A stretch of 64,000 nucleotides of DNA from Epiperipatus broadwayi (Eukaryota > Animalia > Onychophora). The notes beneath the pieces are model-generated. The model searched no databases, was not told the origin of the DNA, and saw only the letters and a list, made by a program, of their open reading frames with translations. Below, piece after piece: positions 16,740 to 55,450 of this stretch. The stretch covers positions 6,820,001 to 6,884,000 of the forward strand of contig JAQFVV010000008.1 in the NCBI GenBank assembly GCA_028023455.1, written 5' to 3'. The position numbers and the translations under genes were made by a program. The number at the start of each line of letters is the position of its first letter. Position 1 is the stretch's first letter.

Positions 16740-16920
16740 GAACTCTAGTAGATAATTATATAAAATTTTTAAACCATCAAACATCATGATCACCATTCTT
16801 TATGCTTACACAAGCTGTTTTTTGAATGAGTAGGCACTAAATAGGGATTTTAAAATCTTCCTGCATCCATTGATTAATCTGGCTTGCACTGAGTGGTGCT
16901 ACTACATGGAAAGTTTTGCC
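16740..16920. repeat. Fragment of the Penelope-associated ~200-bp family, inverted relative to the copy at ~41040
   Basis: GCATCCATTGATTAATCTGGCTTGCACTGAGTGG matches, as reverse complement, 41050-41086 and the arms at 50906-51145. Confidence 0.7.
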
Positions 16921-17479
16921 TCTATAAAATTTTTATTGATTGCTGCTTTTGGGAAAAAAATCTAACTGGTTAGAGAGCCATTGGGTCCCCTCTAAATTGG
17001 ATAGTAATATCTGAAGAAGGGAAATAATAATACAGAAAAAGCAACTTCCAAATAAAAGTGATTAAAAAGCATAAAGAAATGATTAAAGGACAAAAAAAAT
17101 GATGTCTAAAGTATCAGATCATGCATGTACTAATAAACATTAATTGCATTCATTACTCTTTTCAAATTGTATTTTATATTATTATTAGCAGCTGAAAGTA
17201 TTTGAAAAAGTATAATGTTTGATGTTCAACATATATTATAAATGTAATTATCATTATCAGTAGTTATCTGCCAAAAGATCTCACTATATATCAAACTAAA
17301 TCATTTTCACCACTAAATACGGACTTAATGCTGAAAGAGTGTGATACTTCCCACAAGTTCTGCAGCATATTACAAACATTGTGTGTGTGTGTGTGTGTGT
17401 TTAAGAGCAGTGGAACACATGCATCTTACCAAACTAGATTTAATTTAAATCTTTACCTTCTATAGTTATATAATTTCTC

Positions 17480-21162: not shown

Positions 21163-21621
21163 TATGTAATATATAAAGAGCCTGCTACTAGCTCTAAACA
21201 AGCTTAATTATTTTATTTTTTATGATAAATGCTACAAGAGAAAATACATGAAGCTTTTATCTATGATGGTCCCCATCCCCAGACCAGTTTCGAGCTTATG
21301 GCTCTCATCAGTGAGGAGCTAGGACATAAGATTCAAAATATTAACTCAAGCCAAGCATTTATCTAATTCTTAAATATTAAGAAAAAGATCCAAATCTTCA
21401 GACACCTACATGTCTTCAAATTCAGCTCTTTAACCAAAGAAACTATATGAGCCTGAACTAAATTCAGAGGTCCCATATATTAGTAGGCTTAGCAATTTAA
21501 TATAGCCAAAGCCCTAATAGCAAAATTATAATAGTAAAAATCAGTCATATATCATTTATCATAAAAAATAAAATAATTAAGCTTGTTTAGAGCTAGTAGC
21601 AGGCTCTTTATATATTACATA
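21163..21621. repeat. Penelope-associated insertion bracketed by a ~69-bp perfect inverted repeat
   Basis: Arms 21163-21231 and 21553-21621 (ATGTAATATATAAAGAGCCTGCTACTAGCTCTAAACAAGC... and its reverse complement). A second short inversion links 21528-21551 with ~21652-21675. Confidence 0.85.
21276..21317 (-). ncRNA. Minimal type I hammerhead ribozyme motif with intact core
   Basis: UCCUCA-CUGAUGA-GAGC-CAUAA-GCUC-GAAA-C-UG-GUC-UGGGGA. It has a 6-bp stem I, a full CUGANGA/GAAA core, a 4-bp stem II, a minimal stem III and a GUC triplet. Confidence 0.85.
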
Positions 21622-23050: not shown

Positions 23051-26000
23051 TGTAGGTGGGCTGTCTGTGCATCTGTAAAGTGTACATAAAGTTTATTAAA
23101 TTTTTATAATTAAATACAGAATACACATGTATAATTGTCATCATTCATTAGTATTTTCCTTCTAGAAAAATTTACATACAACATGAATATGTTATTAAAA
23201 GATAATATATGCAAGTAAGCTTAAATTATGCAGAAAGGACTAATATAAAACCCTGCAATGGTCTACTCAGTGATGCAATGAATATATGTGTAGTCTTCAG
23301 CAGAATGTTAGCTGAATAATTAAGTGGTTATTATGATTATATATACAAGATATATAAATATCTATGTGTATAAGAAACCCGTAGTTAATGGTAACACACA
23401 ATTGTAAGGACTATATTAAATTATTGTGCATGTGAATAAGTAAATTCATACAACTACAGATTAAAATGGACATTAAGCAGTGAATAAACTTGTGTTAAGT
23501 TTAATTTGTCTTAGTTTATTTTAATAAAGTTATTGATGATATATGGCTGGTATTAAAAGAATACCCTCAGGATACAGCACAATGGCTCAGATACAACTTT
23601 AGCAGAACAACTTGTGCAAGAATGCAGAACCCAATATTTTGATAATTGATAAATCTGCGTAAACTTTTAAAATATTATTAAATAACAGTATCCATGAATT
23701 TGATGTGAATAATACTTTGGCTTTGAAAATATATATTGAACATGTTGAGTGATACATACTTATTAATAGAATCGAAAATGATAAAGTTAAAGTAGCTACG
23801 TTTTTGTCGTTCTCCTAGAAAGATGCATTGTAGGTGACAAAACAACTATGCGACCTCGAAATCCCCGAAGACTTTCCATATACGGAGTTAAAAGACAAGT
23901 TGAATGCCTATTTTCAACTGGCAACAACAAAATAGGTGGTATGCCTAAGATTTAGGAGTTGAAAAGTCATCTTGAGAGCATTATTAAGATCATATTGCAC
24001 TAAGAACATCCATGAAAGAATGTAATCCCAAGTTGGATGACATATAATTATTGTATGGAATGATGGATCACAACTTCAGGAAAATGTTATTAAGTGAACC
24101 AAATTTTAATACAAATATGCAATGGAAAAATGTTCAGCACAAGAAGACCCCAATAGTTGTTAATAAAACAGAAGCCAGCTGTAGGAGCTCAAATGATGTT
24201 TAATAGGTTACTACTGTAGAAAAAAAAGGCCATGTGAAAAACTACTACAAGAAAAAAACATAATATTTGTAATTTAATAAAGCATTTAGCTCACATTTGT
24301 TGAAATAAAACCAGAAGTACAAAAACTAAATCAAGTTCAAACTTTAAATCGTGGATAGGAAGTGTAAGGGAAAAAAAATGATATTAAGAAGATTAATGAT
24401 ACAGAGAATGGTCATATTCTATTGGATGTTATTATATGCAAATAAAAAACTACTACAGGAGTGGACAACCACAGAAAGACTAATCTAAAATTAATGATAA
24501 AAATAAAATAAAATTGCCTTTCAAGAAAACAGATGAGAAATTCACAGATATTAATGGGAATTCAAGAGACTTATGTGGCAAAATAACTGTATTTGTTAAA
24601 ATCAATACTAAAATAAAATTTTTAGCATTGTATATAATGAAGAGACATTTAAGTCTATTTTGGGTAGAAACTGGTTTAGAACACCAGGAATTCATGTCAA
24701 CATCAAGAGAGTACAATTGGAAGCAGAAATTCCCATGTTTGTTCAAATCAAAATCAACTGAATTAAAAACATGGATAGTTGAACTTCTGAGAAAAACCAA
24801 AGATTGAACAGAATGTTAATAATATGGTTAACAAAGACATTTTGATCCCAGTCGCAGACTCATCATGAACTACAGCTGTTGCTGTGACTATGAAGCCACA
24901 TGAGACCATTTGTCTATGTGGAGACTACTGCATTACACTTAACAGATACATCAACAAAAGAGTTTATCCTGTTCCAAGTATGTATAAAGTATTAGCATCA
25001 CTACAGAAGGTGTATGCAAAGATCAATTTAAAGTCTGCCTTCCAACAAATACCTATTTATGGATACAACTGATGAATTGTTAACTATAAGTACCAACCAG
25101 GAACTGTTTAAATGTAATAAGTTATCTTATGGGATTACTGCTGCAACTAATATATTTCAAGCTAAGATGGATAGCTAAATCCAAAGCATAGAAAGAGTTG
25201 CTCTTTACTTAAATGACATATCGATTACTACCCACACAGAGCACGAGTTGGAAATATATTTTCTAGAAGTTTATTCAAAATTTAACAAAATTGGAACAAA
25301 TATTAATACTTCAAAATGTATTTGTACTACTTCTGAGATTAAATTTCTGGAACACAACCAAAAGGAAAAATACTCCAACCCAGAAAAAGTTAAAAGTAAT
25401 AAAAAATGTCAGCAAACCTAGGAACATCAAAAATTTACAGGTATTCTTAAGTTTACTAAACTTTTTTGAGAGTTTTCTCAGATGAAAATCGCATGTTACA
25501 ACACCTTTGTATGTGAATAACAAATGTTTAGTTTTTTGGCTGTTAAAGGAATACGCCAGATTTTGATACTGCTGTACCATCCTGAATCTAATCATCTAGC
25601 CAAAAAGTTAGTTCGACCATACCAGGATATAAATGATGGGCTAATAGACGCAATGTTTTTTCAACATTTTACATCCTTGTACATCAACAAAGAAGATACC
25701 GGCAGATTTATTAATGCATCGAAAATTCACATGCACCTGTCCAAGTTATTAGTAGCTAATAATAAAATTCGTGAAAACAATTTAGATCCTGGAAATTTCG
25801 AAGTCACTAAGCAAGTTTGAATTAGAGACATTTAAAGAAAAAAATGGCTTGTATTAGCTAAATAAATAAAGAGTAATCCAGGTGGAAAATGGAAAACACT
25901 TAAGGATTCACATCAACCATTTATAATCTCTTCAAAATGAGATGTCTAAGGCAAATTAATCAGTAAAAGAGATAATTTTTATAAAGAAGAGGAATGTGCT

Positions 26001-26801
26001 GATTCAATTTCATATGCACAAAATAAGGAAACAACCTCAGATAGCCAGACAAAAAAATCACATCTCATTAAAAGAAATAATCAGATGCTCTAGCAGAACT
26101 AATGGAGGATTTTTCCTCAACAAATTAATCAAATGAAGAAAGACCTGTTGTCACTAACTAGATGTGGGGTTTGTAGAAAACTTGAATGACTAAAGGATTA
26201 TATTTGTAATTAAACCTGTGACCTATTTCTAGAGTGATGGGAAAAGAGGATCATCTATGTTAATATATATTTAAAGTATAAATAAAATTTAGTAAATTTT
26301 TGTAATTAAATACAGACAGTACATGTATAATTGTCATCTTTCATTAGTATTTTCACTTTAAAAAAATTTGAAACAAAAAATCTTTGAATGCTATTAAAAG
26401 ATAATATATGCAAATAAGCTTAGATTATGCAGGAAGGATCGATATAAAACCCTGCAATGATCTACTCAGCGTTGCACTGAAATATTGAATATATAATGTA
26501 GTCATCAGGAGAATGTTGTAATTGAATGGTTATTATGGATTCAATGTGTATACAAGATAAACAAATATCTGTGTAAAAAACCTAATACAGACTAGATTAA
26601 ATTACTGTGCATGTGAATAAGACTAAATGGATTTTAAAGATTACAAAGTAATTTTTAATTGCTACTAATTATTTTATTTATAAAGATTTATTGGCATGTG
26701 AATAAATTTGTACTAAGTTTAATTTGTCCTAACTTTATTTTAATAAAGTTATTGATGCTATCCAGCTGGCGTTGAAAGAATATATTCAGGATGCAGCAAT
26801 A
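23051..26801 (+). mobile_element. Decayed Gypsy (Ty3/Mag-like) LTR retrotransposon with both LTRs
   Basis: Diverged direct repeats at ~23051-23581 and ~26258-26801. PBS-like TGGCTCAG follows the 5' LTR; polypurine GGGAAAAGAGGA precedes the 3' LTR. Remnants include gag (KVATFL, PEDFPYTELKDKL) and pol (ICLCGDYCITLNRYINKRVYPVP, YAKINLKSAFQQIP). No TSD recognised. Confidence 0.85.
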
Positions 26802-27852: not shown

Positions 27853-28127
27853 CTACAAAGAGATTATAAAATTATTAATAAAGAATATACATTTTTAAAA
27901 TGATTTAAACAACTGATTTAATTTGAAAGTAGATGCAGTTCAATTTCATTATAAATTATATTTCACTATTAATGCCTATTATTTTGACACTGATTGTCTA
28001 CTATGTATATATATATAAGAATATATGGGCAGTTGAGAATCAACAAAAATTTATAATGTTTACTGAAAATGGATTACAGGTACTTTTATTTAATCAAAAC
28101 ATATTCTTTCCATGTGTATATATATAA

Positions 28128-29140
28128 CAATAAAACTAATAAATATAACAGTAATTTACTATTACATACAGTCTTTCAATCCGCAGAAGTACTTTCGGTC
28201 AATTCCTTAACCCTCCTCAACTGCCGTTAAATTTAAAAAAAAAAAAAGAAAGCAAACATCACCAACTCAAATCCCAAATTTTAATGTTAGCAGCTTGTCT
28301 ATTAATTATATTCATTTTATTTCTATTTATTAAAATTTCTTTCTTAATTTTTCTTTTATTATGATTTCTCTCTTCATGAAAAATCTTAACAATTTCAATA
28401 TCAAACTTAAATTTATATTTACATGTCCTTTCATGATCCAAGAAAACTGAAGCAATCATTAAATCATTATTATTTTTATTTTTCACACGCTTGTATAACA
28501 ATTCATGCTTCTATAATCTTTTTTCAATACTACACCTCGATTCACCTATATATAACATACATCCACAAAAAATTTGATACACATTACTTTTCTGCTTGAC
28601 AGGTATGACATTTTTAGAATTATTCATTAATTTATTAACATTATTTGTAACACAAAATGAAACATTAAACACATACTCATATATATCCTTAAAAAATTTC
28701 ACTTGAGCATTTGAAATATATGGAATAGATATCCATTTTTACTATCAATCTTCAACTCCTTTAAATCATTATAACTCTTTTTAAATTGGCATAAAGTATT
28801 TATAAATCTGTTCAATCTTATAACCAACTTCAATCAATTTCTTGGCAAATATCTAAATATTTTTTTAATTTATCACATTGGTAAAAACATAATTTTTCAT
28901 TACAAAACAAAAAAGATCTAAAACGTATCATTTTATGCATAAGTGACACTTTTGATTTATGATTTATATCCCATTTTTTCAATGGTTATTTATTAATTTA
29001 TATCTTAACATGTTATTATCTCTTGTAATATTAAATCCAAATACTTGATAATTTTGTCCTGTTCTTTTTCAATAGACCTTTTCAAGCCATTCAAATTATT
29101 TAACTCCTCTATTAGCAAATTTATAGCATTGGCAAATCAA
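28128..29140 (-). mobile_element. Penelope-like element 3' fragment (GIY-YIG endonuclease pseudogene plus hammerhead-like motif)
   Basis: ORF fragments VYQIFCGCMLYIGESRCSIEKRL and KIFHEERNHNKRKIKKEILI fit the Penelope GIY-YIG domain. Hammerhead-like motif at 28181-28226. Confidence 0.85.
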
Positions 29141-29149
29141 AAGTACCAA

Positions 29150-29946
29150 TTATATATAAAATGGCAAGTTTTAGATCTTTTTTGTTTCATATGAAAAATT
29201 ATGTCATTACCCATGTAATAAATTAAAAAATATTGAGATATTTGCCAAGGAAGTGTTGGTTATAAGATTGAACAGATTAACAATACTTTATGTTAGTTTA
29301 AAAAGTTATAATGATTTAAAGGAGTTGAAGATTAATAGTAAAAAATGAACCTCTATTCTATATATTTCAAATAGTCAAGTGAAATTTTTTAAGGATATAT
29401 ATAAGGATGTGTCTGTTTCATTTTGTGTTACAAATAATATTAATAAATTAGAGAGTAATTCTAAAAATGTCATACCTGTCAAGCAGAAAAGTAATGTTGT
29501 GCATCAAATTGTTTGTGGATATATGTTATCGTATATAGGTGAATTGAGGTCCAGTATTGAAAAAAAATTAAAGGAGCATGAATTGTTATACAAGCGAGTG
29601 AAAAGTAAAAATAATAATGATTTAATGACAGCTATATAAACATAAATTTAAGTTTGATATTGAAAGTGTTAAGATTCTTCATGAAGAGAGAACCCATAAT
29701 AAAAGAAAAATTAAAGAAGCAATTTTAATAAATAGAAATAAAATGAATATAATTAATAGACAAGCTGCTAAAGTTAAAATTCGGGACTCATGGGATTTGA
29801 GTTGATGATGCTTGCTTCCATTTTGTTTTTGTTTTTTAAATTTAACAGCAGTTGAGGAGGGTTAAGGAATTAACTGAAAGTACTTCTGTGGAGTGAAAAA
29901 CTGTATATAATAGTTAATTACCATTATATTTATTAGTGTTATTTTT
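29150..29946 (+). mobile_element. Second, inverted Penelope-like fragment, head-to-head with the first
   Basis: ORF 29379-29639 (VHQIVCGYMLSYIGELRSSIEKKLKEH) mirrors 28511-28702. Hammerhead-like motif at 29846-29891. Confidence 0.85.
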
Positions 29947-30023
29947 ATTACAATAGATTTTTAATTAACGACTTTTTATTTGTATTATATATATAAGGAA
30001 AATGATTTAAATTTTTTTCCCTG

Positions 30024-30745
30024 CTATTTATAATTTATAGATAAATTCTGGATAATTGAAAACCATCTAATGATATCCTAAATATTTTAAAAAGAAATTT
30101 CTTTACATCAAAAAGAGATATAATGATTAATAATAGAAACAATAGAATTCACCTATATAATTCAACACAAGTGAACATTATGTAAATATATGAACATGTG
30201 AAAAGTTAAAAAACAATACACATTGTATTTAAGAATTAATTCATCACTTAATAAGAATGACTCTAAAAAATTTTATTTTGATCAGAAATAAAAGTCAGGA
30301 GTCATAAATGATGATGTGATCTTGTAAGACAGCAGTTCCCAACTTGTGGTACATGTATTCCTGGAAATACACAGTGTTTTCTCACTATTTATAATTTATA
30401 GCTAAATTCTGGATAGTTGAAATCCACCTAATGACATCCAAGATATTTTAAAAAGAAATTTGTTTACATCAAGAAAATATATAATGATTAATAAATAAAT
30501 GTAAGAAACAATAAAATTCATCGAAGTAATTTGATAAAAATCAACAGTATGTAAATATATAAACATATGAAAAGTTAAGAAACAATACACATTCTATTTA
30601 AGAATTAATTCATCACTTAAAAAGAATGATTCTAAAATTCTTTATTTTGATCAGAAATAAAACTCAGAAATCATAAATAATGATTTGATCTTATGTTTCC
30701 CAACCTGTGGTATGCATATCCCCGAAGGTACACAGTGGATCGGTT
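30024..30745 (+). repeat. Old ~360-bp tandem duplication that includes the left end of the adjacent hAT element
   Basis: CTATTTATAATTTATAG starts copies at 30024 and 30385. Both copies end in hAT left-end sequence TTCCCAAC(T/C)TGTGGTA...TACACAGTG. Confidence 0.8.
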
Positions 30746-32994
30746 GGGGGTACATGAAAATAATATTTGAATGATATTGTTTTGTGCCTCAAAATGGATA
30801 AGAGGTTGAAAACTGGAACTCTCTAAGAGAGCTGCAGTTAGTATTGAAATTCAGCCTGCTGAGTTGGCAATTGCAAGTTCTTCGAAGCAGTCTGATGATT
30901 TACAAACCCAAGGGTATCAAAGTGCAACAATTGATAGGTTTATTATTGCAAGAGATAAAGTTAACACTATTAAAAATCTCAAAACATCAGTGCTCCACTA
31001 AAGAAAAAAAAATATTCTGTTGAATATTTGGGATATGAATTTTCATTCATGGATGATGAAGACCATCTGAGACCAATCTATGTTGTTTTTGGGGAGATAT
31101 TATCTAACAGTAATATAAAACCATCTTTATTGATGCATCATTTGGAGACAAATTATCCAATTTATAAACAAAAATATGTTAGTTACTTCTAGTGACTATC
31201 AAATGACTCTAATCTAATAACTTATTTCTTAACTGAAAACAAAGTCAATGAGAAGGCAGTTGAATCATCATACAGAATAAGTTATCGTACTGCTAAAAGT
31301 GGCAAAAATAATGCAACTGCTGAAAATTTGATATTTCCTTGTATCAGAAATGCTGTTCAATATATATTCGATGAAGACTGTCTGAAAAATATTCCCATCT
31401 CAATAATACAATTTCTTCAAGAATTAAGGACATGTCTGATGACAATGAATCTATATTAACTGAAAGAATAAAACAGTAACTGAAAGAATAAAAAGAAGTC
31501 CCTTCTTTTCAATGCAAGTGGATGAAAGCACTGATATTTCCAATCTGTTAATTTTTCTTGTTTTTCCAAGATATTTAAATGATAACATACTTGAAGAAAA
31601 TCTTTTACTTTGCTATCCACTCACTGAAAGATGTAAAGGTGGGGAAATTTAATGTTATTCAGTGTTATTTCAGTAAAAAAGAAATTGATGCTGTGATGGA
31701 AAATCTATTTCTGATTGTTACACAGGTTTATGAAGTCGCATCAAAGAAATGACTCCCTACATAACTTGGAGTCATTGCTGTAATCACAGAAAAAGCCTAG
31801 CATCCAAACCCCTACAAGATTTTATTGAATGGAGTGCTCAATCAATCTGTCAAAGTTATTAATTGTATTAAAGCCAATTCAGCAAATTTCAGACTATTCA
31901 AATCTTTATGTGAAGAGATTGGACAGTGACAGTACTATATTACTTTTACATACAAAATTGAAGTGGCTTTCATGAGGAAGATTACTCACAAGATTGTTTC
32001 AATTGAGACATGAAATTCAAGTTTTTGTTTGGAGATCATTCTTTTGAGTTGAGCTTTAAGTTTCATGAAAATGAATAGCTTCAATAGCTTGCATATTACC
32101 TGATATTTTTTCAAAAATAAATGAACTAAACTTAGGAATACAGAATAATTCTATAATCATATTTACAGTATCTGACAAAACAGAGTCTATAATCAAGAAA
32201 TTGGATTTTTGGGAATCATAATATCAAAAAAAAAATTCATCTGAAATTTTTGAGACACTTCACAGTCTCTTATCTGAGAATGAGCCGAAATTGTCAAAAT
32301 TAATAAAATTATAATAGCAAATACTTAAAAGGACTTAAGATATCATTCAGATGGTATTTTGCAAAGTGAAATAGTAAAGATAATTGGGTTTTAAATCCAT
32401 TCCATGAATTATTTTTTCAACAAGCTAAAAAATTATTAGTTCTGAATAAAAAAAATTGATTAAAATTTTGAGACTGATTCTTCTTTACAATCTGATTTCA
32501 AAAAAAGAAATGTCATTGATTTCTGGGCAGCAGTGAAAAAAAGAGTACCAGAAACACAGTGATAATCCAATACATTGTTTATTACCTTTCACGAATACAG
32601 AGCTTGTCGAAAGAACATTCTCATCTTATGCATATATTAAGAATAAATGTCGCAATAAACTTGATGCAACTTCTGGTTTGAGGTTATATCTGTCTTCTTT
32701 TGAACCTGATTTTAAAAAACTAGGATCATGAAACAAACTCAAGGATTGCATTAAAATTATTAATAATCATGTTGAATAAATAAAAAATTGAAAAAAGGGT
32801 TAAATATAAAATAAATAAATGTCATTAGGTTAATTTGAGTTGTTTGATTATTTAGCTAATCTAAAAAAGTTGAAAAAAAATCTTTTTTAAGGAATGGATG
32901 GCGGTAATGAAGATAGGGGATACTAATCAATGGTTATGTGATAGGGTAAAACCTAATCAAGGAATATGGAGAAGAAAAATGTTGGGATCCACTG
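30330..32994 (+). mobile_element. Decayed hAT transposon (Charlie/Buster; ZBED5/ZBED8-like transposase pseudogene)
   Basis: Ends CAGCAGTTCCCAAC and GTTGGGATCCACTG. Broken frames from 30794: EILSNSNIKPSLLMHHLET, FSMQVDESTDISNL, CLLPFTNTELVERTFSSYAYIKNKCRNKLD. Confidence 0.85.
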
Positions 32995-33575
32995 TTTGTA
33001 AAATATAAAGGAGTTGGATTCCAAATGTAATGGAAAACATTTGTTAATATAATATGATTTATCAAAAGTACTTCATAAATCATCTTAGATAACAGACAAT
33101 ATACTAAGAATTTATTCATCAGACAATAATACCATGTCATGAAAAGATAATGATTTTCTCTTGTAGCAATAATATAAATAAACTCTCCATATAGTAGTTA
33201 CCTGTTATGTGCTAGCATGAGATGGTGATCATGTGATAAATAAACTCTAATTACAATCCAAGACATATTACAAAGACTTGGAATAAGCAGGTAAATCACC
33301 ATTTATGCATAGCATATATTTGAAGGTCTTCGTGGATATAAGATGTAAATGATACAATTTTTGCATTAGATTTTGAGTTGAAGGATTTAATTGTATTATC
33401 ATCTGGTAGCCATTAATAACTAAAGTTTATAATAGATGGTACTATATTAAAGCTAGAAATAATCTTGTTAATATATCATTACATTTTGAAAATCAGTGCT
33501 ATGTTGGTACCATCATTATTAACTTTAAAAAAAAAAACCTAATTTGAATATATGTGGATTTATGCACATATATAG

Positions 33576-34167
33576 TGTAACGATATATAAATATGTCGTT
33601 ACATTAATTTAAAATAAAAACTTAAAAGTTCGCAAATAAAAGTAAAAAACTAAACGCTAAAATTAAAATGTTTGTTAAACGTATATACATTCGCATAGAT
33701 GCCAAACTTTAAAATTTTTTTTTTTAAAAAACAAATAAATAAGTATTTGAACAATAAAAAAAAGTACAAGATTTAAAAATAAAAACAGGTATTAATTAAT
33801 TCTTGTAATCTGTAAATGGAAATGATTGTTTATAAATTGTTTGAAAAGCAAGCTAGCCTGGAGCTCTTGTATAATTAAAATGATCTGATGAAAGATAGAT
33901 AAGAAAATAAAGAGAAATTAGCTTGACCAATGGAAGCACTAAGCCTTGGCTCGGACCCTAACGAAAGTGATGGATTAGTGACGTTTTGTTGATTGAATCC
34001 GTGTGGATAATATAAAAAGGGAAATACAGTTTTTTCTGGAGTTCCAGCGTTGTGTGTTTGAGAGATGTGGTAGGACGCACATACCACACTCTCTATTTAA
34101 AAAAGAAAAATGAAAAGACTGTGATACCTTGAACCAGCTATTGCCATCTCCAGAACATTATCTTCCA
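33576..34167 (+). promoter_or_regulatory. LTR-like segment of the left arm (mirrored at 36368-36962 on minus)
   Basis: TG...CA boundaries, CCAAT near 33927, TATAAAA at 34011 and CAGT at 34027; it ends one base before the PBS-like motif. The LTR boundary is inferred from the PBS position. Confidence 0.6.
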
Positions 34168-34168
34168 A

Positions 34169-34187
34169 TGGAGGCGTCGCGGGAATT
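34169..34187 (+). other. tRNA primer-binding-site-like motif, probably tRNA-Thr (mirrored at 36348-36366)
   Basis: TGGAGGCG(T/C)CGCGGGAATT directly after ...CA-A. The right-arm copy matches 16/19 to the reverse complement of the metazoan tRNA-Thr(AGU) 3' end as recalled from memory (TGGAGGCACCGCTGGGATT). Confidence 0.7.
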
Positions 34188-37100
34188 AAAAGCAGAAACT
34201 TGGACTCTTCTACCGTGAGCTATGAACTTTACAAATTAACAACAACAAAAAAAAGTAATTAAGAACTTTCGTCATTGTTTTTTTTAAAGATTCAGCTAAT
34301 TTAAATTTTAAAATGAACTCTTATTTGATTTTCAAATTAATATTTGATTGTTTAAATTTATATAGTTAAGTTTTGCTAAAATCATTTCCATTTTATTATT
34401 TTTATTTGTAGTAATATTTATTGTAGAAGTTATTAAATGCATTACATTTAAGTTGGGTATAGACGTTGCATAGATTCGTTAGCGGTTGATTATGTTGTGG
34501 TTTTCACAGTCGATTGGAATATATAAGTCAACGATATCACTGCGGTGTCTTATGATGAACACCAAAGGGTCTCCTGTATTCCCTCAGCAATTGACGTTAT
34601 CGATTGACTTTGTATTTTGATCGGTTGTGTTTAATTTGGAATGTTTTTGACCGTGGAATCTGTGCAGCCGATCTATACTCGACATTATAAAACAAATTGT
34701 ATAAAAATAATCTGTGCGAACATATTTAAATGTTAAATTTAAGTCGGGCAAGAATGGCTATATAGTTTTGTAAAGTTATATTAAGGGAGGGTAATCTTAG
34801 GTTATTCATTTCGTAGTTGAATTGGTTCAATGGATTGGATATATTTGTGTAATTGTAGATGTAGTATGAGATCCGCTACGGGCAGGATTATATATATACG
34901 CCACACACCTTCTGTTTGCCTATGGATGGGTTTGTAAGACGGCAAAGGACAGTGAGGATCGAATCTAACCGCAAACTACGATATCTGCTCTACAAGGCGC
35001 CATCTAGGCATTTAAACCTAGAAAAATTTATAGAGTAGGCAGATACGCGCTGTTAAGATTCCACTTTATTTAAATATTCAGATCGTTAGCCCAAGTCACT
35101 AGCTCAGTGGAGTAGCAGAGAAAATAAAATATAAATTTTATATCTTAAATATAAAAGAATAAAAGCCACTGCCAGAAATTAACACATAAAAATATTTATT
35201 TACGCACATATAAAATAACATTTAAATTTTGAGGAATAAATTCAACATTTTAGATTTTTCTATTAATCTTTAGTTTTACATTTAAGTAAATTACAACCAT
35301 GAGTTTAATATTTATTTAGATAGTCGAGTATGAATAGACTACATAGATCTGCATTTGAAAAGAAAATATTCTTCCCTGATTTAACCTTAGGCAACAAATT
35401 TCGCAATCAAACCGGCGCCAATCCATCTGATACATTTATGTATTCAATGTAGCATGAAAATACGACAACACAAAATACTATCCTGTTAGGAATGTACATC
35501 TGATCAGTAAGTAGAATTAGAGAAGACATTGTCTCTCCACCAACAGGAATGTCACATCTGTTGGCAAGTAGAACAATAAACATAAAACTCCATAGGAATG
35601 GACTGCGGTCCTTTGCCGTCTTACAAACCTATCCATAGGCAAACAGAAGGTGTGTGGCGTATATATATAATCCTGCCCGTAGCGGATCTCATACTACATC
35701 TACAATTACACAAATATATCCAATCCATTGAACCAATTCAACTACGAAATGAATAACCTAAGATTACCCTCCCTTAATATAACTTTACAAAACTATATAG
35801 CCATTCACGCCCGACTTAAATTTAACATTTAAATACGTTCGCACAGATTATTTTTATACAATTTGTTTTATAATGTCGAGTATAGATCGGCTGCACAGAT
35901 TCCACGGTCAAAAACATTCCAAATTAAACACAAATAACGTCAATTGCTGAGGGAATACAGGAGACCCTTTGGTGTTAATCATAAGACACCGCAGTGATAT
36001 CGTTGACTTATATATTCCAATCGACTGTGAAAACCACAACATAATCAACCGCTAACGAATCTATGCAACGTCTATACCCAACTTAAATGTAATGCATTTA
36101 ATAACTTCTACAATAAATATTACTACAAATAAAAATAATAAAATGGAAATGATTTTAGCAAAACTTAACTATATAAATTTAAACAATCAAATATTAATTT
36201 GAAAATCAAATAAGAGTTCATTTTAAAATTTAAATTAGCTGAATCTTTAAAAAAAAACAATGACGAAAGTTCTTAATTACTTTTTTTTGTTGTTGTTAAT
36301 TTGTAAAGTTCATAGCTCACGGTAAAAGAGTCCAGGTTTCTGCTTTTAATTCCCGCGGCGCCTCCATTGGAAGATAATGTTCTGGAGATGGCAATAGCTG
36401 GTTCAAGGTATCACAGTCTTTTCATGTTTCTTTTTTAAATAGAGTGTGGTATGTGCGTCCTACCACATCTCTCAAACACACAACGCTGGAACTCCAGAAA
36501 AAACTGTATTTCCCTTTTTATATTATACACATGGATTCAATCAACAAAACGTCACTAATCCATCACTTTCGTTAGGGTCCGAGCCAAGGCTTAGTGCTTC
36601 CATTGGTCAAGCTAATTTCTCTTTATTTTCTTATCTATCTTTCATCAGATCATTTTAATTATACAAGAGCCCCAGGCTAGCTTGCTTTTCAAACAATTTA
36701 TAAACAATCATTTCCATTTACAGATTACAAGAATTAATTAATACCTGTTTTTATTTTTAAATCTTGTACTTTTTTTTATAAAAAAGTACGTTCAAATACT
36801 TATTTGTTTTTTAAAAAAAAAATTTTTAAAGTTTGGCATCTGTGCGAATGTATATACGTTTAACAAACATTTTAATTTTAGCGTTTAGTTTTTTACTTTT
36901 ATTTGCGAACTTTTAAGTTTTTATTTTAAATTAATGTAACGACATATTTATATATCGTTACAATAGATATTCTCCTTTATTATTTTACTAATGTTCGACT
37001 GATAATCAAATTGATGTTAATTAAAAAAATGTAAGCAATTGTGAACTCTTAAAAAAAAAACATAAATCAATGCAGTAACACATTGTGTGGGCTGATATTA

Positions 37101-37773
37101 ATAACAATTTAAAATACTGTATCAATTTTTTTATTTTTTAATCTTTGAATATTATATAATTAAAATGTTATTTATATGGGACAATTTTAAACAAAAAAAT
37201 TATTGAAAATATAATTTGATAACATTGCTCAAGACATTTACCATGGCAAAAAAAATAAAGGAAGGCAATAGAAAAAGGAAGAAAAAAATGAGGAAAAGAA
37301 AGAGAGCTAATTTGACTTCAAATGTTTTGCAAGTTTTTTCTTTTTTTTATGGTTGTGAACTTAACCATTTGATATAAATGTTATAAGTATATTCAAAAAT
37401 ATCCTAAAACAAATCCTTTCAACCTCAGTCTTTCAAAAAGAAAGAAATATAAAATAATTTATATTATGAAACATCACAAATAAGACTGCTATAAAAAATA
37501 AGTGGGAAATTGAACAAAAGCAAAAATTGAATTTCATAAATTGATTATCTTTTAAATAATAAATATTTTGTTATAATTGTTCAGCTAATAAAAAAATTAC
37601 TAGTAATTTAAAGAGAACAATAATAGCAGCATCATCATCTTACTTGCTTTAATTAAAATATAATAAATTTAACTTTAAATGAATCACAACTGGCAAGTCT
37701 TAATTATCTTAACACTAGTAATTGGTGTTTTTACTGCCATATGTCAAACTATAAATATTAAACTTTTACTAAC

Positions 37774-37914
37774 AGATCTTCTTTAACATGTTGTTTATCA
37801 TGATGAACGTGATTGAAGGTATGAGGTTCTGCTGCTGGTGAAGTGGAAAAAGTAGTATTGCACATATCCTGTGAATCTTCACAAGCTGCTGCAATTTCAT
37901 CCACCACACTTGTT
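37774..37914 (-). CDS. ATG13: ATG13 coding exon
   Basis: TTTTCAG acceptor, GTTAGT donor, 141 nt: TSVVDEIAAACEDSQDMCNTTFSTSPAAEPHTFNHVHHDKQHVKEDL. This parallels human VEDSQEVCTTSFSTSPP. Phases match. Missed by the ORF track. Confidence 0.92.
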
Positions 37915-38399
37915 CTGAAAATAAAGAAATAAAATATATGAAGTATTATCTATAAAAAATATTTTAATAGTTCTTAAGTTCCATGCCAAAACTATTGTAA
38001 ATTAAACTATTTAAATAAAAATTTGGGATATATACTTCCACAACACAGAAATTTTAAGTAGAATTGCAAAAAAAGAATAATTACTATTAAATGGGACTCT
38101 ATTCCTCTCTGAAGCCACAATGAAACCAAGTAGTTTCCTAATGATAACTCCATTAAGTTCTTGTCTGTGAGATATTATTACATTGTGATCATTCACATAT
38201 AAATAAATGTAAACAGCCTTCTCTCCAAACATGAATCATATATAATATTGAATTTAATGATTTAACATCTCAGTTTAAAACTAAAAAAATATTACTATCT
38301 CTTTTTAGATGCCTGATACTTCCTAAAAAAAAGATATAGGTTGCATTTTCTTGAAGGCAGGATATAAATATATATCTGTGTAAATACTCATTTTATTTT

Positions 38400-41300
38400 T
38401 AATATGACATACAAAAACAATTTTTAAGTATCATACCATGAAGACTTTACATCTTTAGACGAGATAGCAATATGTAATCAAAACAAATGATAAGATTTAA
38501 TGGTTAATGATGTACATTGCTATTTGATAATAACATTTTATTTCGCCATTTGCAATTGTAGATTAAATTCATTTGGAAAAAGAATATAAGAATTGAAAGG
38601 TTTGTTTTAATGTCAAAAAGAACATTATCAGGATTTGTGAAGTCAGAAAGAAAAGTAAAAACAACTGATCTAATCAATAGACATTACATTATTATAAAGG
38701 TATTAATAGAATGAAATTCAATATAAAAATTGAAGAACAACAAAATAACATCGGAGAGATCAACGCTATATCAGAAATAAGACCAAATGCAGATACGTTT
38801 GACTTATGTCCCAATGAAGCCTAAATTCTGATAGAGAAGTATAAAATGATTATACATATATATAGAATGCTTTTTAAAAAAACAAGCAGTAATTTAAAAT
38901 TGTTATGAACACTTTAATAATAAAAATGGAAAATGATTAAGGAATGAAAATGAAAAAATTTGAAAATAGAGCAGAAAAGACTGAGAATATAAACAAGAAA
39001 AGTAGTTGTTTGGTTTTTTTTTAAAAAATACACTGCAAAACTGGATCATATTTTGATTAAGAGAAATTGTGAATTTCAAGACTGTAATCTACCTAATGGA
39101 TCCAACACAAGTAATGCAAAATACAGAGATAAAATCTATTAAAAAAGACAATATTAATTGTTAATATTCTTAACTGTTAGAAAATTTCTAATGAATTTAA
39201 ACTAATTTTACAAATCATTTTAAACATTAAGACTTTAGAAAATGTCTCAAACTTGAACAAGATCTATAAAATGATAACTAATATTCTATTAAGAACTTTT
39301 ACACAACCAAGTAAAAAAAGCAGCCATTCACCAGTAAAATTTCAACTGAAATAAAATAACATATGAAGACAAAAATGGTAAGAAAATATTTAAAAATCCT
39401 CAATTTGCAAGAGTTAATTATCTGTGATTCTATAAATTGATGTAAAAATGAATTAAAACCTAATAAACATCATATGACTTCAGCCAACATAATGCTGAAA
39501 GGAGAAAAATTCATATTTTTACTATTCCAATTCTATTACCTATTTAAAGTAATCATTACATGCTAATACTTATTAAATCTCTATCCACTGCCATCCTATT
39601 CATATCTCTAAGTTAATTTCTGGTGTATGGTCTTTGTCAATGAAGAGTTTTTGGATATAGATCTAGTGTACCTGGATTTTCTTGGATCTAATGCATTTTT
39701 CATCCAACTGCCATTTCACATTCTTTATTGTACCAACAAGCTACCAGTCTGAAAATCAAAAACATCTTAATATCTTGAAGCTAGCCAATTTTCTTGCATA
39801 GTTCTATAGATCTAACACCAGTTTAATATCCATAAGCCAGAACTACTTTGAAGATATGGATAAGACAATACTGCATAGGAATTTAAAAAACATTATTCAG
39901 CATCAACAATTATTCAAGATAATAGTAGGTGACAAAATTGGAATAGTGTAAACATAAGTTTGCTCCTCAAAAACATTATATAAACTAAGACCACTCAAAT
40001 TAAGTTAGCCAAAAGATGAAAACATCTATAGTTATTAAAAAACTAAAGACACCAAATATATACTAACCTGATATCAAAGCTATATAATTATGCAAGTAAG
40101 CTGGTTTGGTGTTCAAATTACTAAAAAGTTTTTGTATTTTAGCTCATAGCTTGAGAGTTATATAAAAAAAGTAAAAGATATAATAAAATCCAAGTGCACT
40201 ACGTACAAATCCAAAAATTTCTCACTGATGAAGATCATATGGCAAAAACAAATCAGAAAATATGGAAAGACAATTAGCTAAGGATTTTTATAAATACTGC
40301 CATATAGCATTTATTGATTACTCAAATTTATAGTTCAGTAGGACAATGATATGAGAGGAGTGTGTTCCACCAAGAATTAGATAACATAAGGAAATATAAT
40401 TGTAAAATGTTAAGAAAAACATAAAAGTCTCAGAAATAGAAATAATGTTAGCATTGGGAAAAAAATTGTTTCAGCAATTAAAAAAAACTGGACTATTACT
40501 AAAAAGAGGATAACATCTTAAAGTATTGAGAAAATTTTGCAATACATAATAAATAAATAAAGGAGCTCATACAAATATATCATCTGTAATGTCTGTCATC
40601 TTTTAAATAAAGAAGTGAAGCCTGCAATTTATGAGGAATGAAAAGTTCCAGAAAATGATTGAATTATAATAGATATTTTAAAAGAAACAGACGTCAGATA
40701 ATTGGAAGAGTACTAAAGTGATATTGATAATTAAGATAGATGAAAATATATATATAAAATTATAAATTTAGTAACTTTCTGTAAATTCTATATACAAAAA
40801 TAATTTACTGAGATTACTAAACTAGTGAAGATTTTGAATCAAGCTGACCAAAAAAAAAATAATAATCTGGACTTAAAAATGATTCCTCACAACAAATCAG
40901 ATTTGAATATAAACAAAAATTATAAAAAGGATTATTGAATATGAGATATTATTTTGCATTGGATTTTTAGATTATGAAAAGATAATGATGATATAAACAT
41001 TTTCATTATGATTAAAGCTTTAGAACAGGAAACTCTCTCCATACAGTAGTGCCACTCAGAGCAAGCCAGAGTAATCAATGGATGCCAAAAGGCTTGTGCA
41101 TAAAATTCCTATCTAGTACTCATCCAATATCTCCAGCCTAGTTTCTAGCTTGTGGCTTTCATCAGTGAAGAGCCTTGGATCTGAGATCATTGCACCTAGA
41201 TCTTAGGACCTAATGCAACCCTCCAGCAGACACCTTTTATCTCTACTTAACTACAAAACTATGAGAATAAAATTGAAAACACAATATTTTCAATCCGGGC

Positions 41301-42897: not shown

Positions 42898-43158
42898 ACG
42901 TAACATGGAGCACATATTAGACATGCCGTACCTTTTCATATTCATATCAATCTGCTAATAACTTCTTTGTAATCTTGTGATCTGACCAAAATAACGTGTA
43001 TGCGGATCTTATACATATTTTCGCAAAAAAAATTTTTTATGAAAATAACGTGTACACGGATCTTTTGTACATGATATTTTCCCAAGATTTCAAAGTTATC
43101 GGCAGATTGAATACATATGTGAAAAGGGGCAGTGTGTCTAATACGTGCTCCATGTCAC
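42898..43158. mobile_element. MITE-like element with ~80-bp imperfect inverted arms and an internal ~45-bp tandem duplication
   Basis: GTAACATGGAGCACATATTAGACA... is mirrored by ...TGTCTAATACGTGCTCCATGTCAC. AAAATAACGTGTA(T/C)(G/A)CGGATCTT occurs twice inside. Superfamily and TSD not determined. Confidence 0.6.
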
Positions 43159-48786: not shown

Positions 48787-50905
48787 ACCTCACACACCCT
48801 TTTATTTCAAGTTAAATATAAATAATCCTTGCAAAGTAAATATAAGTATTGATTATAAAATATTTTTTTATATCTATTATTTATATTTCTAAAATTTGAT
48901 CTTTGTAAAAATTCTTCCAAAATAAGTTACATTATACAAATTTAAAAAATTGCTGATCCCAACATAACTTTGCTAAAGTATCAAAAATCTCCATGAATGG
49001 TTAAGTAACAATAGTATAGCAGAAAACTATAAGCTCATAGAAATTTTGATTATGTCAACTACTAATTGCGAATCACTATGAATATGTGATTTTATAATTA
49101 TCTGACAACATTTCACAGAGCGACAATGTTAATAACCTTAAAGATTCCAAAAAAATAATATGCCTCTTATGTTTAATATTATTGAAGTTATGATCAAACT
49201 GTTGGTTGCAACTTTTCTGATATTATTCATTAATTTGTACTGTAACTCTAAAGCTGATCTCCAAATAAAAACTCTTAAGATAAACACTGCTTTCTCTAAA
49301 TAGTGCACTAATAGCCTTTAGTCTGAATTTATATATAAACACAGAACTTGTATCTTTAACTATTAAAAGCCAGTTTTTTTTCTGTGTCATTTAAAGAACT
49401 ATGATTCTTATCAACAATGTTATTTATACTTAAACATTTTGTTTGTTTATTTATTTGGCACAAATCCAGAGTTTTCTCTAGCTTAATGTCAATTAAAATA
49501 AATATGTCTCAAAACTTTCAAAAATGTGATCTATTACAAAAAAAAATTTGCAAGTTAAAATTTTTTCTGTGATCAAGTAAGAAAAAAATTCCCATATTGT
49601 AATTATGTGCAAAATGCTTTCCAAGTCCACACCAAAATCTTAAAGAAATAAACACAATGATAGAAAAATCATAATAAAAAATTGAGTTGAAAAGTAATGT
49701 ATTAAATAATCTATATTTTAGTATAAGCTTGATATTCCATGAATTTGGGTGTAATTTAAATAATTATATCCAAAATATAAAGCATTTAAAAAGTAGCAAT
49801 TTGTTTGTCATTCAAGTAAATTTGAAAATATTTTCTGATTAAGTTGATGTAAAAGAGTTAATCTTCAATTGTCATAAAATGTTTGTTTTATTTTATGAGC
49901 AATTGTTCCACGGCAAGTTCAGGAGACATTTTAGGAGCATAAATTCTATTTTATAAATAATGTTACTGAAATTATGCCTACATAGTCTGGGTTTTCCTAT
50001 TTTAATATCGATATCCTTTTTGCTGTCACTAATAACTCAAGGATTGTTCCATATACTAAAACTTATTTAAAATATAATCCAAACATACAAAGATCAATAA
50101 TCCCTCAAATTTTTGAAAAATTGATATCCTGCTTAATTTTTTTCTCTCTCTTTTAAATTTTTATTAAAATAATACTATATCATAAATTGAAAGTTATTCT
50201 TTTATTTATTTTTAACATCTATACTAAATTTTTTGATTTACTTGTAGAAAAATAATTATACAAAATTTTATTATTCTCACTTATTTTATATGCTGTTTAA
50301 TTAGGTATTTTATTGTTCACAATGAAATATTAATATCATTAGAATTGTTTTAATTATCCATATTAATCGCTTGAGAGTTAATATTAGAATTTTTTACTGT
50401 ATGACATTCTGTTAAATTTAAATATTGATTATTATACAATAAAAAAAATCTAATAAATTTTCCAAACTTTATTTTCAGCATATCAACTAGTAAAAATGTT
50501 CATACATATTTATAAATCATACTTATTTAAATTAATATTAACTTTAATTAAATGACAGTATATTACAACTCAGCAAAATGCTAAATCCATAATAAATAAT
50601 CTTATCCTTAAGCTTAAATGTGATAATTTTAAAACCTCAATAAAAAGTTTCCAAGTTAAATAAATTCAGAATATAGCCAACATAATAAAAATTGATTCTA
50701 TCTTTAATGATTATTTAATATATACTGTACTTATTATTTTATTTGGCATATGGATTTTGTTTTTTTAATCAGCTTAACTATTAACTAAATATCATAAATG
50801 AATCCATAGAGAAACCAACCAGAAAATAGATTCATTAACAGTTTTATTAAGTTTTTCAACCTTGCCAGTGTAGACATTGATTCAACAATCATTAATTATA
50901 TAATT

Positions 50906-51145
50906 CAGGCAAAACTCTCTAAACGTATTGCCACTCAGTGCAAGCCAGAGTAATCAATAGATGCCAAAGGCTTGTGCATAAAATCCCCATCTAGTACCTA
51001 CTCATCCAATATCCCCAGATTAGTTTCTGGCTTGTGGCCTTAGTCAGTGAGGAGCCTAGATGGGGATTTTATGCACAAGCCTTCTGGCATCCATCGATTA
51101 CTCTGGCTCGCACTGAGTGGCAAAACGTATAGAGAATTTTGCCTG
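50906..51145. repeat. Hairpin of the Penelope-associated unit: ~89-bp inverted arms around a degenerate hammerhead (51012-51053, minus)
   Basis: Arms 50906-50994 and 51056-51145. The loop reads on minus CTGACTA-AGGC-CACAA-GCCA-GAAA-CTA-ATC-TGGGGA. Confidence 0.85.
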
Positions 51146-52166
51146 TTTTAATAACAGTTAAGAGCAAGCATAAGAAATGGTGATTATGTGATGTTTATTG
51201 GCTTAAATTATATAATTCATGGTTTATTTTTATTCATATCTATATAGATCAGTTAGTTTTCTCAAAATAAACAACAATTTCTTGGCAATCTGGGAACTAT
51301 ATGAACATCCACAAATCAACAGAGATGAATCATTAGATACATAATAAAAAAATGTATTATTTAAACAGCAAATATGAAAAATGAACTGAATATGCAAAAG
51401 CACAGAATATTATTTTATTATATTTTGAAAGTATATTTTATGTACTGTAAAGAATTATACATATACTTCCAATTTTAGTTAAATATAAATGCCAATGCAA
51501 TACCTAAAGTATTATATAAAAGAATGTGTAATATAGACTATTAATTTCTAAAATCTATATATATACAAATAAACACAAGTAAAATTACTGTACATACAAT
51601 AAAAAATTAACTGCATCTGAAAGTGTAAAATGTATAATAATCATGCATTTAAACTGACTTCTCATTAGCCTTGAAATCTATGTATATTTCAAACTTTCAA
51701 AACAGATTAATATGTGCTGTAAAATTTCACAATTATTATAGTTTTCATGCTTACAAAGTAAACAATAATGTTTTTCAATATATATTTTATGCATAGCTTC
51801 TATTGATTTGTTGATATAAGTAGATCCAAATCTGAGTTGCTGAGGAATTAGTGTTGATATTACTAAAATCAATTGTCTAGTGAAGATTTTCATATTTTGG
51901 CAAATGAACAAATTGTGATCAAATATAAATTTCAGAAAATACATTAGACATCTTAATGCAATTAATATTTGAAAAATGTGTAATTATTAAATAGCGAGAT
52001 AAATGCATAATCATTTAAACACAATAGTAAACAAATCATAATATTTTCCTGTAATATATACAAATTAAAATCATAATTTATTCACAATTGTTATGTTTAA
52101 AGTAATGTTTAAGTGTAAGCATTAATCTAAAAATAATAAAAATAAAAACAATGAGAAAAAACTAAC

Positions 52167-52799: not shown

Positions 52800-55450
52800 A
52801 TAGACAACTGTGACACTATACATAAAACAATTATTTAATACATCAATCCGGCTTTCTTTCTTAATGAAACCTTTTCAAAATGTTTTGTTTTACACAATCA
52901 CGCGATGTGATACACTGTGACTTCTCCTTAAATGGAGTCAGGAATCTCTCAACAACTATGCCCAGAGAAATCTATTAGCCACTTTACTTTCCCTTTCCAT
53001 TCTCCACCTTAAGTTTTCCCATAATCTGCTCCATCCCATTTCCACAACATAATCTTTGTCAACTCTATGGCCTTTATATCTAAAACCCCCTCATCTTTTC
53101 CCAAACCCAGCATAAAAACCAATAACCCACTTTCTGTATAATTATTTTTTTCATATTTATTCTTCCATAACTTCATTATTTGTACCCTTTCTGCTTTCAA
53201 GCATTTACATTCAATTAACAAATGCCTAATATTTTCTATGCCTTCTTTACACAATTTGCAGACTAAATCACCCATATTTTTCCATTTACATGTATATTCT
53301 CTTGTTGCTAAAGATTTCATTCAAACCTTAAACAATAAACTACTTTCCTTGCTATTATCATAAATTAACTCACACCTAATAATTCCATTTACTTCTATAT
53401 ATGTTTAAACTCTTTTTACTCTCCACACTAGTTCTCCATCTCTCTAACTCCCTAGTCTTTATTAATGCATCTATTCTTTTATCCCATTCCTTACCATTAT
53501 AACCATCAACAATCCTCCTAACACAATCACCCCATCTTTTGTACAAGTATCCTGATACAAATTCTTTATCCAAATCTTTTTGCATTCCGCATTACCTTTT
53601 TCACCCATCTTGTTGCCTGCCTTTACTCGTAACCCAATTAAATACTATTTTAGCTATCTTTTATTATCCATAAACTGCAATCTACCAAACATTTTCATTT
53701 TACTGTTTGCATCTCTCATATAAAAACTTGACCATCCCATTTCTCCTTGAATTGTCTCCCTTGTTGTCCACACATCTGCATCCAATGCACGTCTTCCTAC
53801 TTCCCTTTGTACTTTTTCTAAATAATATCATATCCCTTTACTAACACATAATGCATCATTACCATATGTTAACCCTGCTACTGCAACTCCCATATAGTTC
53901 TAGCTACATCCTATTTATTATATGAAAACATTGTTAATTTCTCTATCAATCCCTTTCTTTTTTTTGCTTCATTTATCAATTTTTTTCTCCCATTCATCCA
54001 AGCAATTTTTCTGATTACTTAAGATGATTCTCAAATAACAATATCTATTCACCACACTTAACTTTATATCCCCCAATAAAAATTCTATATCTTCTCTTTC
54101 CCAGTATTAACCATCATTATATTTGATTTTTCTTGACTAAATTTAATCCTCATCTCTTTACTCACCCTTGCACATGTCCTCAGCATAACTTCCAATATCT
54201 TCTCTTCTTTCTGCACACAAAAAGACATCATCAGCAAAAAAAAAAACACTTGACAAAGTATAAACTCCCTTGCCACATATTAATGGTATCTCTATCCCCC
54301 TTCCTAATCTTTCTATTACTCTCTCCATTTCACTCAAATATAATGAAAACAAAATAAGTGACATAGGGCATCCTTGCCTTAGTCCTACCCCATTTTTAAC
54401 TTTAGCTGATTCTATATTCCCTGATATGTATAGTAAATATTTTCATATAATTTCTTAATATCCACTAAAGCTTCATCCATTCCCAAATTTGCTAAACTTA
54501 CCCATAATCTATTTCTATTTACTCTATCATATGCCTTCTCTATATCTATAAAACTCATATATAACTGTCTACCTGAATTCCTATTCATATCCTTAAGTTG
54601 TGTAACTACAAATAAACTATCTACTATATGCCTATCTAATCTAAAACCTCATTGCATTTCCCCCACTACATTATTCCCTTCTATCCATTTTGCAACTCTT
54701 CCAGCCACCATATATGTAAAAACTTTATATAAAACTGATGTTACCGCTATCAGTCTATAATTGCTTAACTTTCTATGATCCTTACCCTTTCCTTCCAATT
54801 ATCCGGAAAAACTCTCTTTTGTGCCACCTTATTAAAACAGGATAATAGCTTTACTTTTGCCCTATACCCTAAATTCATTACCATCCCTGCTATCCATCCA
54901 TAAAACCTCTTGCCTTTCCATTTTTCAATTTCTTCCCTACCTCATTCAATTCAGTTTTTGTAAACCTAATGCTCCCATTACTATATGTTTTCTATCACTC
55001 TGTCCCTCACATCTAACATCTTTTCTACATCCATTACATATGTTTAAGATTCTCTCTAAGTCTTCTCTAGAGCTCCACTCTATTCCCTCATCATCGCATA
55101 ATAATCTCTCTCTCCCCCCTTCATTTCTTCTTTTAATGTAATTCCAAAAATTTTTACTCCCATTTCTTTCACTTTTATTAATATCCTCCAACAATTTACT
55201 ATTCAATTTCATTATCTCTATAATTATCTATTTTAGCGAACTTTTTCTTTTCTAAGTACTTTTCCCATTTAGTATTAATATCTTTTTTACTTTCCTTGTT
55301 CTTAATAGCACACTTATATTTTCTGCATGCTTCTTTCCTTTCTTTTACACTTTTACTAATTCTCATTTTTTTATTACTTTTATTCTTATGAATATTCTTA
55401 CCTAAAACCCTATTTGCCACTTTTTTTATTTCATCACACCAGCAACGCCC
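52800..55450 (-). mobile_element. 5'-truncated LINE, frameshifted but relatively well preserved (RT plus C-terminal CCHC-type motif)
   Basis: Frames include NYRLIAVTSVLYKVF, MSFIDIEKAYDRV, GLRQGCPMSLILFSLY, FFADDVFL and CKLCKEGIENIRHLLIEC. These explain the ORF-track entries at 53009-55477. Confidence 0.9.

Follow-up and report, generated by a model that had tools for sequence, protein, structure and literature searches.

A long-armed palindromic element bounded by TGT/ACA and flanked by a 4-bp duplication in an ATG13 intron of Epiperipatus broadwayi

Analysis of a 64,000-nucleotide stretch of the genome of the onychophoran Epiperipatus broadwayi (GenBank assembly GCA_028023455.1, contig JAQFVV010000008.1, positions 6,820,001 to 6,884,000 of the forward strand; this whole stretch is referred to below as the window, and its own numbering is used throughout) revealed a 3.4-kb palindromic element at positions 33576-36962, within a large intron of the gene ATG13. 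The element is composed of two long, diverged arms in inverted orientation, with exact TGT/ACA limits and a 4-bp direct repeat at its borders, and it has no coding capacity. We interpret it as a non-coding, non-autonomous mobile element of the foldback type, with very long terminal inverted repeats (TIRs), which was inserted whole into the ATG13 intron; to this interpretation we assign an approximately even probability. The components of the palindrome, together with the putative target site duplication (TSD), are as follows:

33572..33575, no strand: putative TSD, left copy, ATAG (direct reading of the sequence)
33576..34950, plus strand: left arm, 1375 bp, non-coding (inverted repeats I1-I5, BLASTN and pairwise alignment)
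33576..33603, plus strand: terminal near-perfect palindrome of 28 nt at the left end, TGTAACGA... ...TCGTTACA (DNA fold)
34951..35607, no strand: unique centre (spacer), 657 bp, non-coding
35608..36962, minus strand: right arm, 1355 bp, reverse complement of the left arm (inverted repeats, BLASTN and alignment)
36935..36962, minus strand: terminal palindrome of 28 nt at the right end (sequence and motif search)
36963..36966, no strand: putative TSD, right copy, ATAG (direct reading of the sequence)

The repeat finder resolved the arms into five collinear inverted-repeat blocks, and BLASTN aligned one arm with the other at 96.0% identity across 1385 columns (gaps counted). Pairwise alignment identified 23 substitutions (12 transitions and 11 transversions) in 1381 columns as well as four gap runs of 5, 2, 1 and 24 columns, i.e. 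a divergence of ~1.7% substitutions, plus indels. Substantial subrepeats are absent from the arms, and only two low-score, AT-rich tandem stretches of 42 nt were detected per element. Comparison of the 657-bp centre with the arms, with its own reverse complement and with the rest of the window gave no match; the idea that it is a decayed continuation of the palindrome was rejected, since neither self-complementarity nor a match to the arms was found. At the junction of the centre with the right arm no more than 1-3 nt could pair according to the alignment, a result that would suit template switching or end joining and is diagnostic of neither.

The left end of the element reads TGTAACG... and the right end ...CGTTACA, and the inverted symmetry stops exactly at these points. 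In the whole 64 kb, both heptamers are present only at the two ends of the element. Immediately outside each end is the tetranucleotide ATAG; with the base composition of the window (A 0.38, T 0.36), the chance of such a 4-bp match between the flanks is ~0.009. In the output of the repeat finder the inverted repeat runs on for 8 bp beyond the ends, where the extra bases match at 6 of 8 positions, because the target is (TA)n-like (ATAT-ATAG-ATAT). Each arm starts, at its outer end, with 28 nt that form a near-perfect palindrome of their own, with a 12-bp stem of -7 kcal/mol (DNA fold; z = -4.15, none of 200 shuffled sequences being as stable). Alignment also revealed that both arms end at the same internal position, which makes one duplication-inversion event likelier than two insertions. 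Given the exact TGT/ACA limits, the 4-bp duplication and this shared internal stop, insertion of the element as one unit is most likely, as had been proposed in a preliminary description of the same DNA. The structural observations of that description were borne out as well: near-identical inverted arms of ~1.36 kb around a 657-bp spacer (recovered by the repeat finder, BLASTN and alignment), TGT/ACA outer ends with an exact ATAG duplication, and no open reading frame (ORF) of note, the longest being of 70 aa, without a Pfam match or a homologue.

A structure of this type could have arisen in three steps: (i) a progenitor would have had one of its ends duplicated by folding back, so that identical TGTAA... 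ends came to lie on either side of a short unique centre; (ii) a DDE enzyme of the retroviral integrase class, supplied in trans, would have cut ATAT-ATAG-ATAT with a 4-bp stagger and attached both ends there, leaving the ATAG duplication; and (iii) the arms would have diverged after insertion, the divergence itself being observed. We infer an enzyme of this class because TGT/ACA ends combined with a 4-bp duplication are its mark; it could be either a transposase of the Ginger2/TDD type or the integrase of a long terminal repeat (LTR) retrotransposon.

The coding potential of the element was assessed at several levels. ORFs of the centre do not exceed 58 aa, and no ORF of at least 35 aa in the arms or the centre gave a Pfam match. 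The 70-aa ORF of the arm has no homologue among 5.8 billion proteins, and exact look-ups of the ORFs of the element (70, 70 and 58 aa), of an ATG13 exon ORF and of the ORF of a non-LTR retrotransposon (LINE) fragment, both described below, returned no record in protein collections. No Rfam family matches positions 33300-37200 at E up to 1. The searches for relatives covered viral, metagenome, plasmid, phage and protein collections, the host genome not being among them. The terminal 28-mer gave no matches in viral contigs, a 25-mer spanning the end of the LTR-like segment and the adjoining primer-binding site (PBS)-like motif (see below) gave none in metagenomes, and the arm and centre had no match in plasmid and phage collections. 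A literature search on palindromic elements of the "inverted-LTR" kind retrieved nothing pertinent.

A second non-coding palindrome was identified at ~28115-29952, i.e. ~4 kb from the element and within the same ATG13 intron. Its arms (~830 bp) are ~84% identical to each other according to BLASTN, with a mean column identity of 90% in the alignment, and enclose a centre of 175 bp; this palindrome is older than the main element. It begins with TGTAT... and ends with ...TTACA, and its right flank, ATAGAT, is also the right flank of the main element. An 11-mer, TTACAATAGAT, comprising the end TTACA and the flank ATAGAT, is found in two places in the window, which are the right boundaries of the two palindromes; of random 24-nt windows, approximately 0.05% have 11 nt or more in common with the windows taken at the boundaries of the main element. 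This resemblance suggests that long-armed palindromes with TGTA ends may constitute a recurrent class of foldback-type elements in this genome, perhaps with a preference for ATAG targets. Because they appear to be recurrent, a transposon class would fit better than a one-off aberrant cDNA. The outward-pointing ORFs of the second palindrome (80 and 86 aa) have neither a Pfam match nor a homologue, and their GIY-YIG-like appearance, with the Penelope-like reading of this palindrome, was dropped for that reason. Immediately to the right of the second palindrome are direct repeats of 81% identity (30024-30376 and 30385-30737).

The preliminary description had also read each arm, from the outside inwards, as an LTR, a PBS-like motif and a leader. 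The features concerned are:

33576..34167, plus strand: LTR-like segment, starting with TG and ending with CA (inner edge set only by the adjoining PBS-like motif)
34169..34186, plus strand: PBS-like 18-mer of the left arm, TGG followed by a G+C-rich run (sequence)
36349..36366, minus strand: PBS-like 18-mer of the right arm, one base different from the left copy (alignment)

Several features of the arms are in agreement with this reading. The PBS-like 18-mer, TGGAGGCG(T/C)CGCGGGAAT, begins one base past a CA, 592 bp from the end of the element, and is kept in both arms. Sequences of this type are rare: the two strands of the window together contain just 11 18-mers that start with TGG and have at least 12 G+C, 2 of which are the motif itself. 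Patches of the arms have a higher G+C and CpG content than the 25% G+C background, and the TGT/ACA outer ends and the 4-bp TSD are those expected of an LTR element. Moreover, it has been proposed that the TIRs of Ginger transposons could come from oppositely oriented LTRs (PMC2836005).

Other observations argue against an LTR origin. The inner edge of the "592-bp LTR" is marked by nothing except the PBS-like motif, so that the definition of the LTR by this motif is circular. The putative U5 end, ...TTCCA, keeps only the CA and is not the inverted complement of the outer TGTAA; the sole proper partner motif for the outer end is located 21-28 nt from each outer end. No family of direct repeats was detected in the region 32000-38500, in which the arms are solely inverted, and the 64-kb window contains no direct LTR, solo LTR, reverse transcriptase (RT) or integrase remnant, apart from an unrelated LINE fragment (zf-RVT match, 53009-53320). 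Neither a gag-like ORF nor a Pfam match was found in the ~780 bp inward of the motif or in the centre. A polypurine tract beside a 3' LTR was likewise not found; there is no 3' LTR, and both ends of the element are the same end.

The search for a tRNA partner of the PBS-like motif was conducted with a tRNA-gene pattern composed of the complement of the discriminator, acceptor strand and T-stem, with T-stem pairing required and textbook T-loop invariants. The prokaryotic genomes (596 Gb) gave 11 matches, IMG/VR 1 + 1 and the metagenomes 7, none of which overlaps a tRNA predicted by ARAGORN; these counts are about those expected by chance, and the result is a weak negative, because animal tRNAs are hardly represented in the collections searched. 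The first version of the pattern, the only one run on the prokaryotic genomes, was too strict, having a fixed base opposite tRNA position 61. This position is almost always C in tRNAs. Since position 16 of the motif would need U61, pairing of the motif with a tRNA is limited to at most 15 nt. The 18-mer itself had three chance matches in G+C-rich phage DNA among viral contigs, none of them a tRNA, and a literature search with the motif as a string retrieved only unrelated primers. A D-arm-like appearance of the stretch beside the motif was discounted, because Rfam at relaxed thresholds gave no tRNA-like match in this region.

The reading of each arm as an LTR with a PBS-like motif and a leader is therefore not supported: no tRNA partner emerged from the collections searched, the putative inner end does not mirror the outer one, and the window shows no trace of gag or pol and neither direct nor solo LTRs. 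Of the two origins that had been put forward in the preliminary description (a fold-back cDNA accepted by integrase, or a cut-and-paste element built from an LTR 5' end), the fold-back and the integrase-type insertion are most likely, whereas the derivation from an LTR is unsupported by any test run. If the arms were nonetheless the 5' LTR, PBS and leader of a Gypsy/BEL-type element, the palindrome would be a fold-back cDNA or a folded-back provirus end, with two U3 ends, that was taken by integrase, or else a product of later cut-and-paste movement. Given the evidence for and against the LTR reading set out above, we regard such an origin as possible though unlikely. The more specific proposal that the arms are a true U3-R-U5-PBS-leader series, that integrase inserted this two-U3 DNA, which might now move by cut and paste, and that the second palindrome is an older product of the same process, appears distinctly doubtful.

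It may also be asked whether the palindrome was formed in place, either from one insertion or from two nearby insertions of opposite orientation, reshaped by inverted duplication or deletion, with the ATAG match arising by chance. In such AT-rich DNA a 4-bp match is expected at ~1% per fixed boundary, and more often if the boundaries can be chosen freely; the (TA)n-like flanks stretch the inverted repeat 8 bp outwards, and there are further palindromic structures nearby. However, a fold-back in place would have included flanking DNA, yet the true symmetry halts at TGT/ACA (with 6 of 8 matches in the extra 8 bp), independent insertions would not share the base at which they are truncated, and neither arm matches any other sequence of the window. 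Local rearrangement is therefore improbable in our view. Chimeric fold-back reads, resulting from a missed adapter or from amplification, are known to yield palindromes in contigs, but those are typically near-perfect, with a centre that is absent or adapter-sized, and involve the flanks. The arms of the present element differ by 23 substitutions and four indel runs (one of 24 columns), its 657-bp centre is unique, its termini are specific (TGT/ACA with a TSD), and its flanks continue as unique DNA within the 64 kb, which makes an assembly artefact very improbable. We consider equally remote the possibility of a head-to-head pair of 5'-truncated, target-primed retroelements, whose 3' ends would be the outer ends of the palindrome. 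Penelope-like elements, with their inverted pseudo-LTRs, do occur with inverted terminal copies, and short outward-pointing ORFs are present in both arms of the second palindrome. In contrast, the main element gave neither a hammerhead ribozyme nor any further Rfam match at E up to 1, it shows no RT or GIY-YIG signal, and such retroelements are not marked by TGT/ACA ends and an exact 4-bp TSD; the Penelope-like reading of the main element was rejected in view of the missing hammerhead match.

Several observations weigh against the preferred interpretation, i.e. a non-autonomous foldback-type transposon inserted as a unit. The PBS-like motif is unusual in an AT-rich window, and a plain DNA-transposon origin leaves it unexplained. 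There is a single copy of the element in the window and no relative in the viral and metagenome collections, which limits any claim that it belongs to a mobile family, and no integrase or transposase gene, such as the H2C2 + DDE integrase-like ORF that an autonomous Ginger2/TDD partner would encode, is present within the 64 kb. The second palindrome has CATG as its left flank and hence no clean TSD, so that its kinship with the main element is based on the post-hoc match of the 11-mer. The length of the arms and the sequence of the target, discussed below in relation to Ginger2/TDD, count on the same side.

With respect to the progenitor, a plain DNA transposon is favoured over an LTR 5' end, because of the prior expectations and the failed LTR tests; we place this at no better than an even chance, a figure that includes the undecided core of unit insertion. 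The significance of the element depends on this choice. As a plain long-TIR transposon, it would represent one further uncharacterised repeat family of an AT-rich invertebrate genome, and its interest, for annotation, would be local. If the arms were a true LTR 5' end, the element would indicate that integrase can insert DNA with two U3 ends in vivo. An LTR origin would also supply a tangible intermediate in the relationship that has been proposed for Gypsy-type LTR elements and Ginger DNA transposons (PMC2836005), and the evidence so far falls short of that.

The window is gene-poor (25% G+C), and ATG13, on the minus strand, is its sole clear gene. A 191-aa ORF at 52127-52702 matches Pfam PF10033 (ATG13), and tblastn with ATG13 proteins located exons at 52723-52196, 27842-27534 and 9587-9381 (minus strand). 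The exons span more than 43 kb and are separated by very large, repeat-filled introns; since the first two of these exons flank the main element, it is located inside an intron of ~24 kb. In this position, a palindrome with arms of 1.36 kb could give rise to hairpin RNA and could also make the site fragile. The best matches of the ATG13 exon (centipede, clam, horseshoe crab, scorpion, beetles and water bug) are only 58-69% identical, and for this reason the host appears to have no close relative in the protein collections.

The window contains a number of other repeats. A self-complementary stretch of ~960 bp (89% identity to its own reverse complement) at 13401-14677 overlaps 2.3 copies of a 361-bp tandem unit (92% matches). 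A 2044-bp element at 60111-62154 has TIRs of 68 nt (GGTTCTAG...) and is flanked by eight A residues on either side, which could be the 8-bp TSD of a hAT-like non-autonomous element, although the flank is of low complexity. Short TIR-bounded or palindromic elements resembling MITEs (miniature inverted-repeat transposable elements), with termini unrelated to TGT/ACA, were found at 21163-21621, 11059-11229, 42900-43158 and 50901-51150, the last of which has related copies at 41020-41175 and 16822-16945. As the window holds several TIR-bounded MITE-like elements, cut-and-paste elements are apparently common in this genome. Direct repeats of 71% identity are present at 23076-23579 and 26272-26798.

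Two further sequences are related to retroelements. A tRNA-Ala(TGC)-like sequence detected by ARAGORN at 5451-5528 (minus strand) is directly followed by a poly(A) run and has no Rfam tRNA match at the gathering score; it looks like a tRNA-derived short interspersed element rather than a tRNA gene. The decayed remnant of a non-LTR retrotransposon lies at 53009-55477 (minus strand), just upstream of the large ATG13 exon. It contains a 103-aa ORF that matches zf-RVT at a sub-threshold level (E = 9e-5) and is adjoined by ORFs of 88 and 92 aa. The GC skew over 52-56 kb is -0.43 to -0.48.

Comparison with known systems places the main element close to the transposons of the Ginger2/TDD group, which are characterized by TGTNR termini, 4-bp TSDs, TIRs of 50-180 bp and a preference for AT-rich RTATAY targets, and which have been described in aphid, hydra, sea anemone, nematode, snail and lancelet (Bao, Kapitonov & Jurka 2010, PMC2836005). 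The TGTAA termini of the element fit TGTNR, and it shares with this group a 4-bp TSD (ATAG), an AT-rich target and the presence of TIRs. It differs from the described members in three respects: (i) its arms, at ~1.36 kb, are about ten times as long as their 50-180-bp TIRs, (ii) its arms end in a 28-nt terminal palindrome, and (iii) its 6-bp target, T-ATAG-A within ATATATAGATAT, is AT-rich but does not conform to RTATAY. Membership of Ginger1, whose targets are CCGG/CCGT (PMC2836005), was excluded, the target here being ATAG. MITEs of the Ginger class have been catalogued for insects (PMC5199201).

TGTNR termini together with 4-bp TSDs and AT-rich targets are also a signature of Gypsy-type integrases (PMC2836005), and the termini, TSD and AT-rich target of the element would fit a non-autonomous Ginger2/TDD-type transposon and an LTR origin equally well. 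Like Gypsy/BEL elements, it has TG...CA ends, a 4-bp TSD (the range in those elements being 4-6 bp) and a TGG-led, G+C-rich 18-mer at the place where a PBS would be expected. Unlike them, it has inverted repeats, an unmirrored inner "LTR" end, and no polypurine tract, gag/pol or tRNA partner that could be found, and two U3 ends are not producible by reverse transcription. Inverted terminal repeats are shared with DIRS-like tyrosine-recombinase (YR) retroelements, but those integrate without a TSD and possess genes for gag, RT and YR as well as an internal complementary region, whereas the present element has a TSD and no coding capacity.

In its general plan, i.e. long inverted arms, a short non-coding centre and presumed mobilisation in trans, the element resembles long-TIR transposons of the foldback type. 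Non-autonomous foldback-type derivatives with long arms are familiar in other superfamilies, as exemplified by FB of Drosophila and by Galileo (P superfamily). The arms of FB consist of tandem subrepeats and its TSDs are of 9 bp, while those of Galileo are of 7 bp; the lack of tandem subrepeats in the arms and the 4-bp TSD consequently place the element outside both families. As it stands, it is an uncharacterised, non-autonomous, long-TIR element of the integrase type, and of a kind that is already known.

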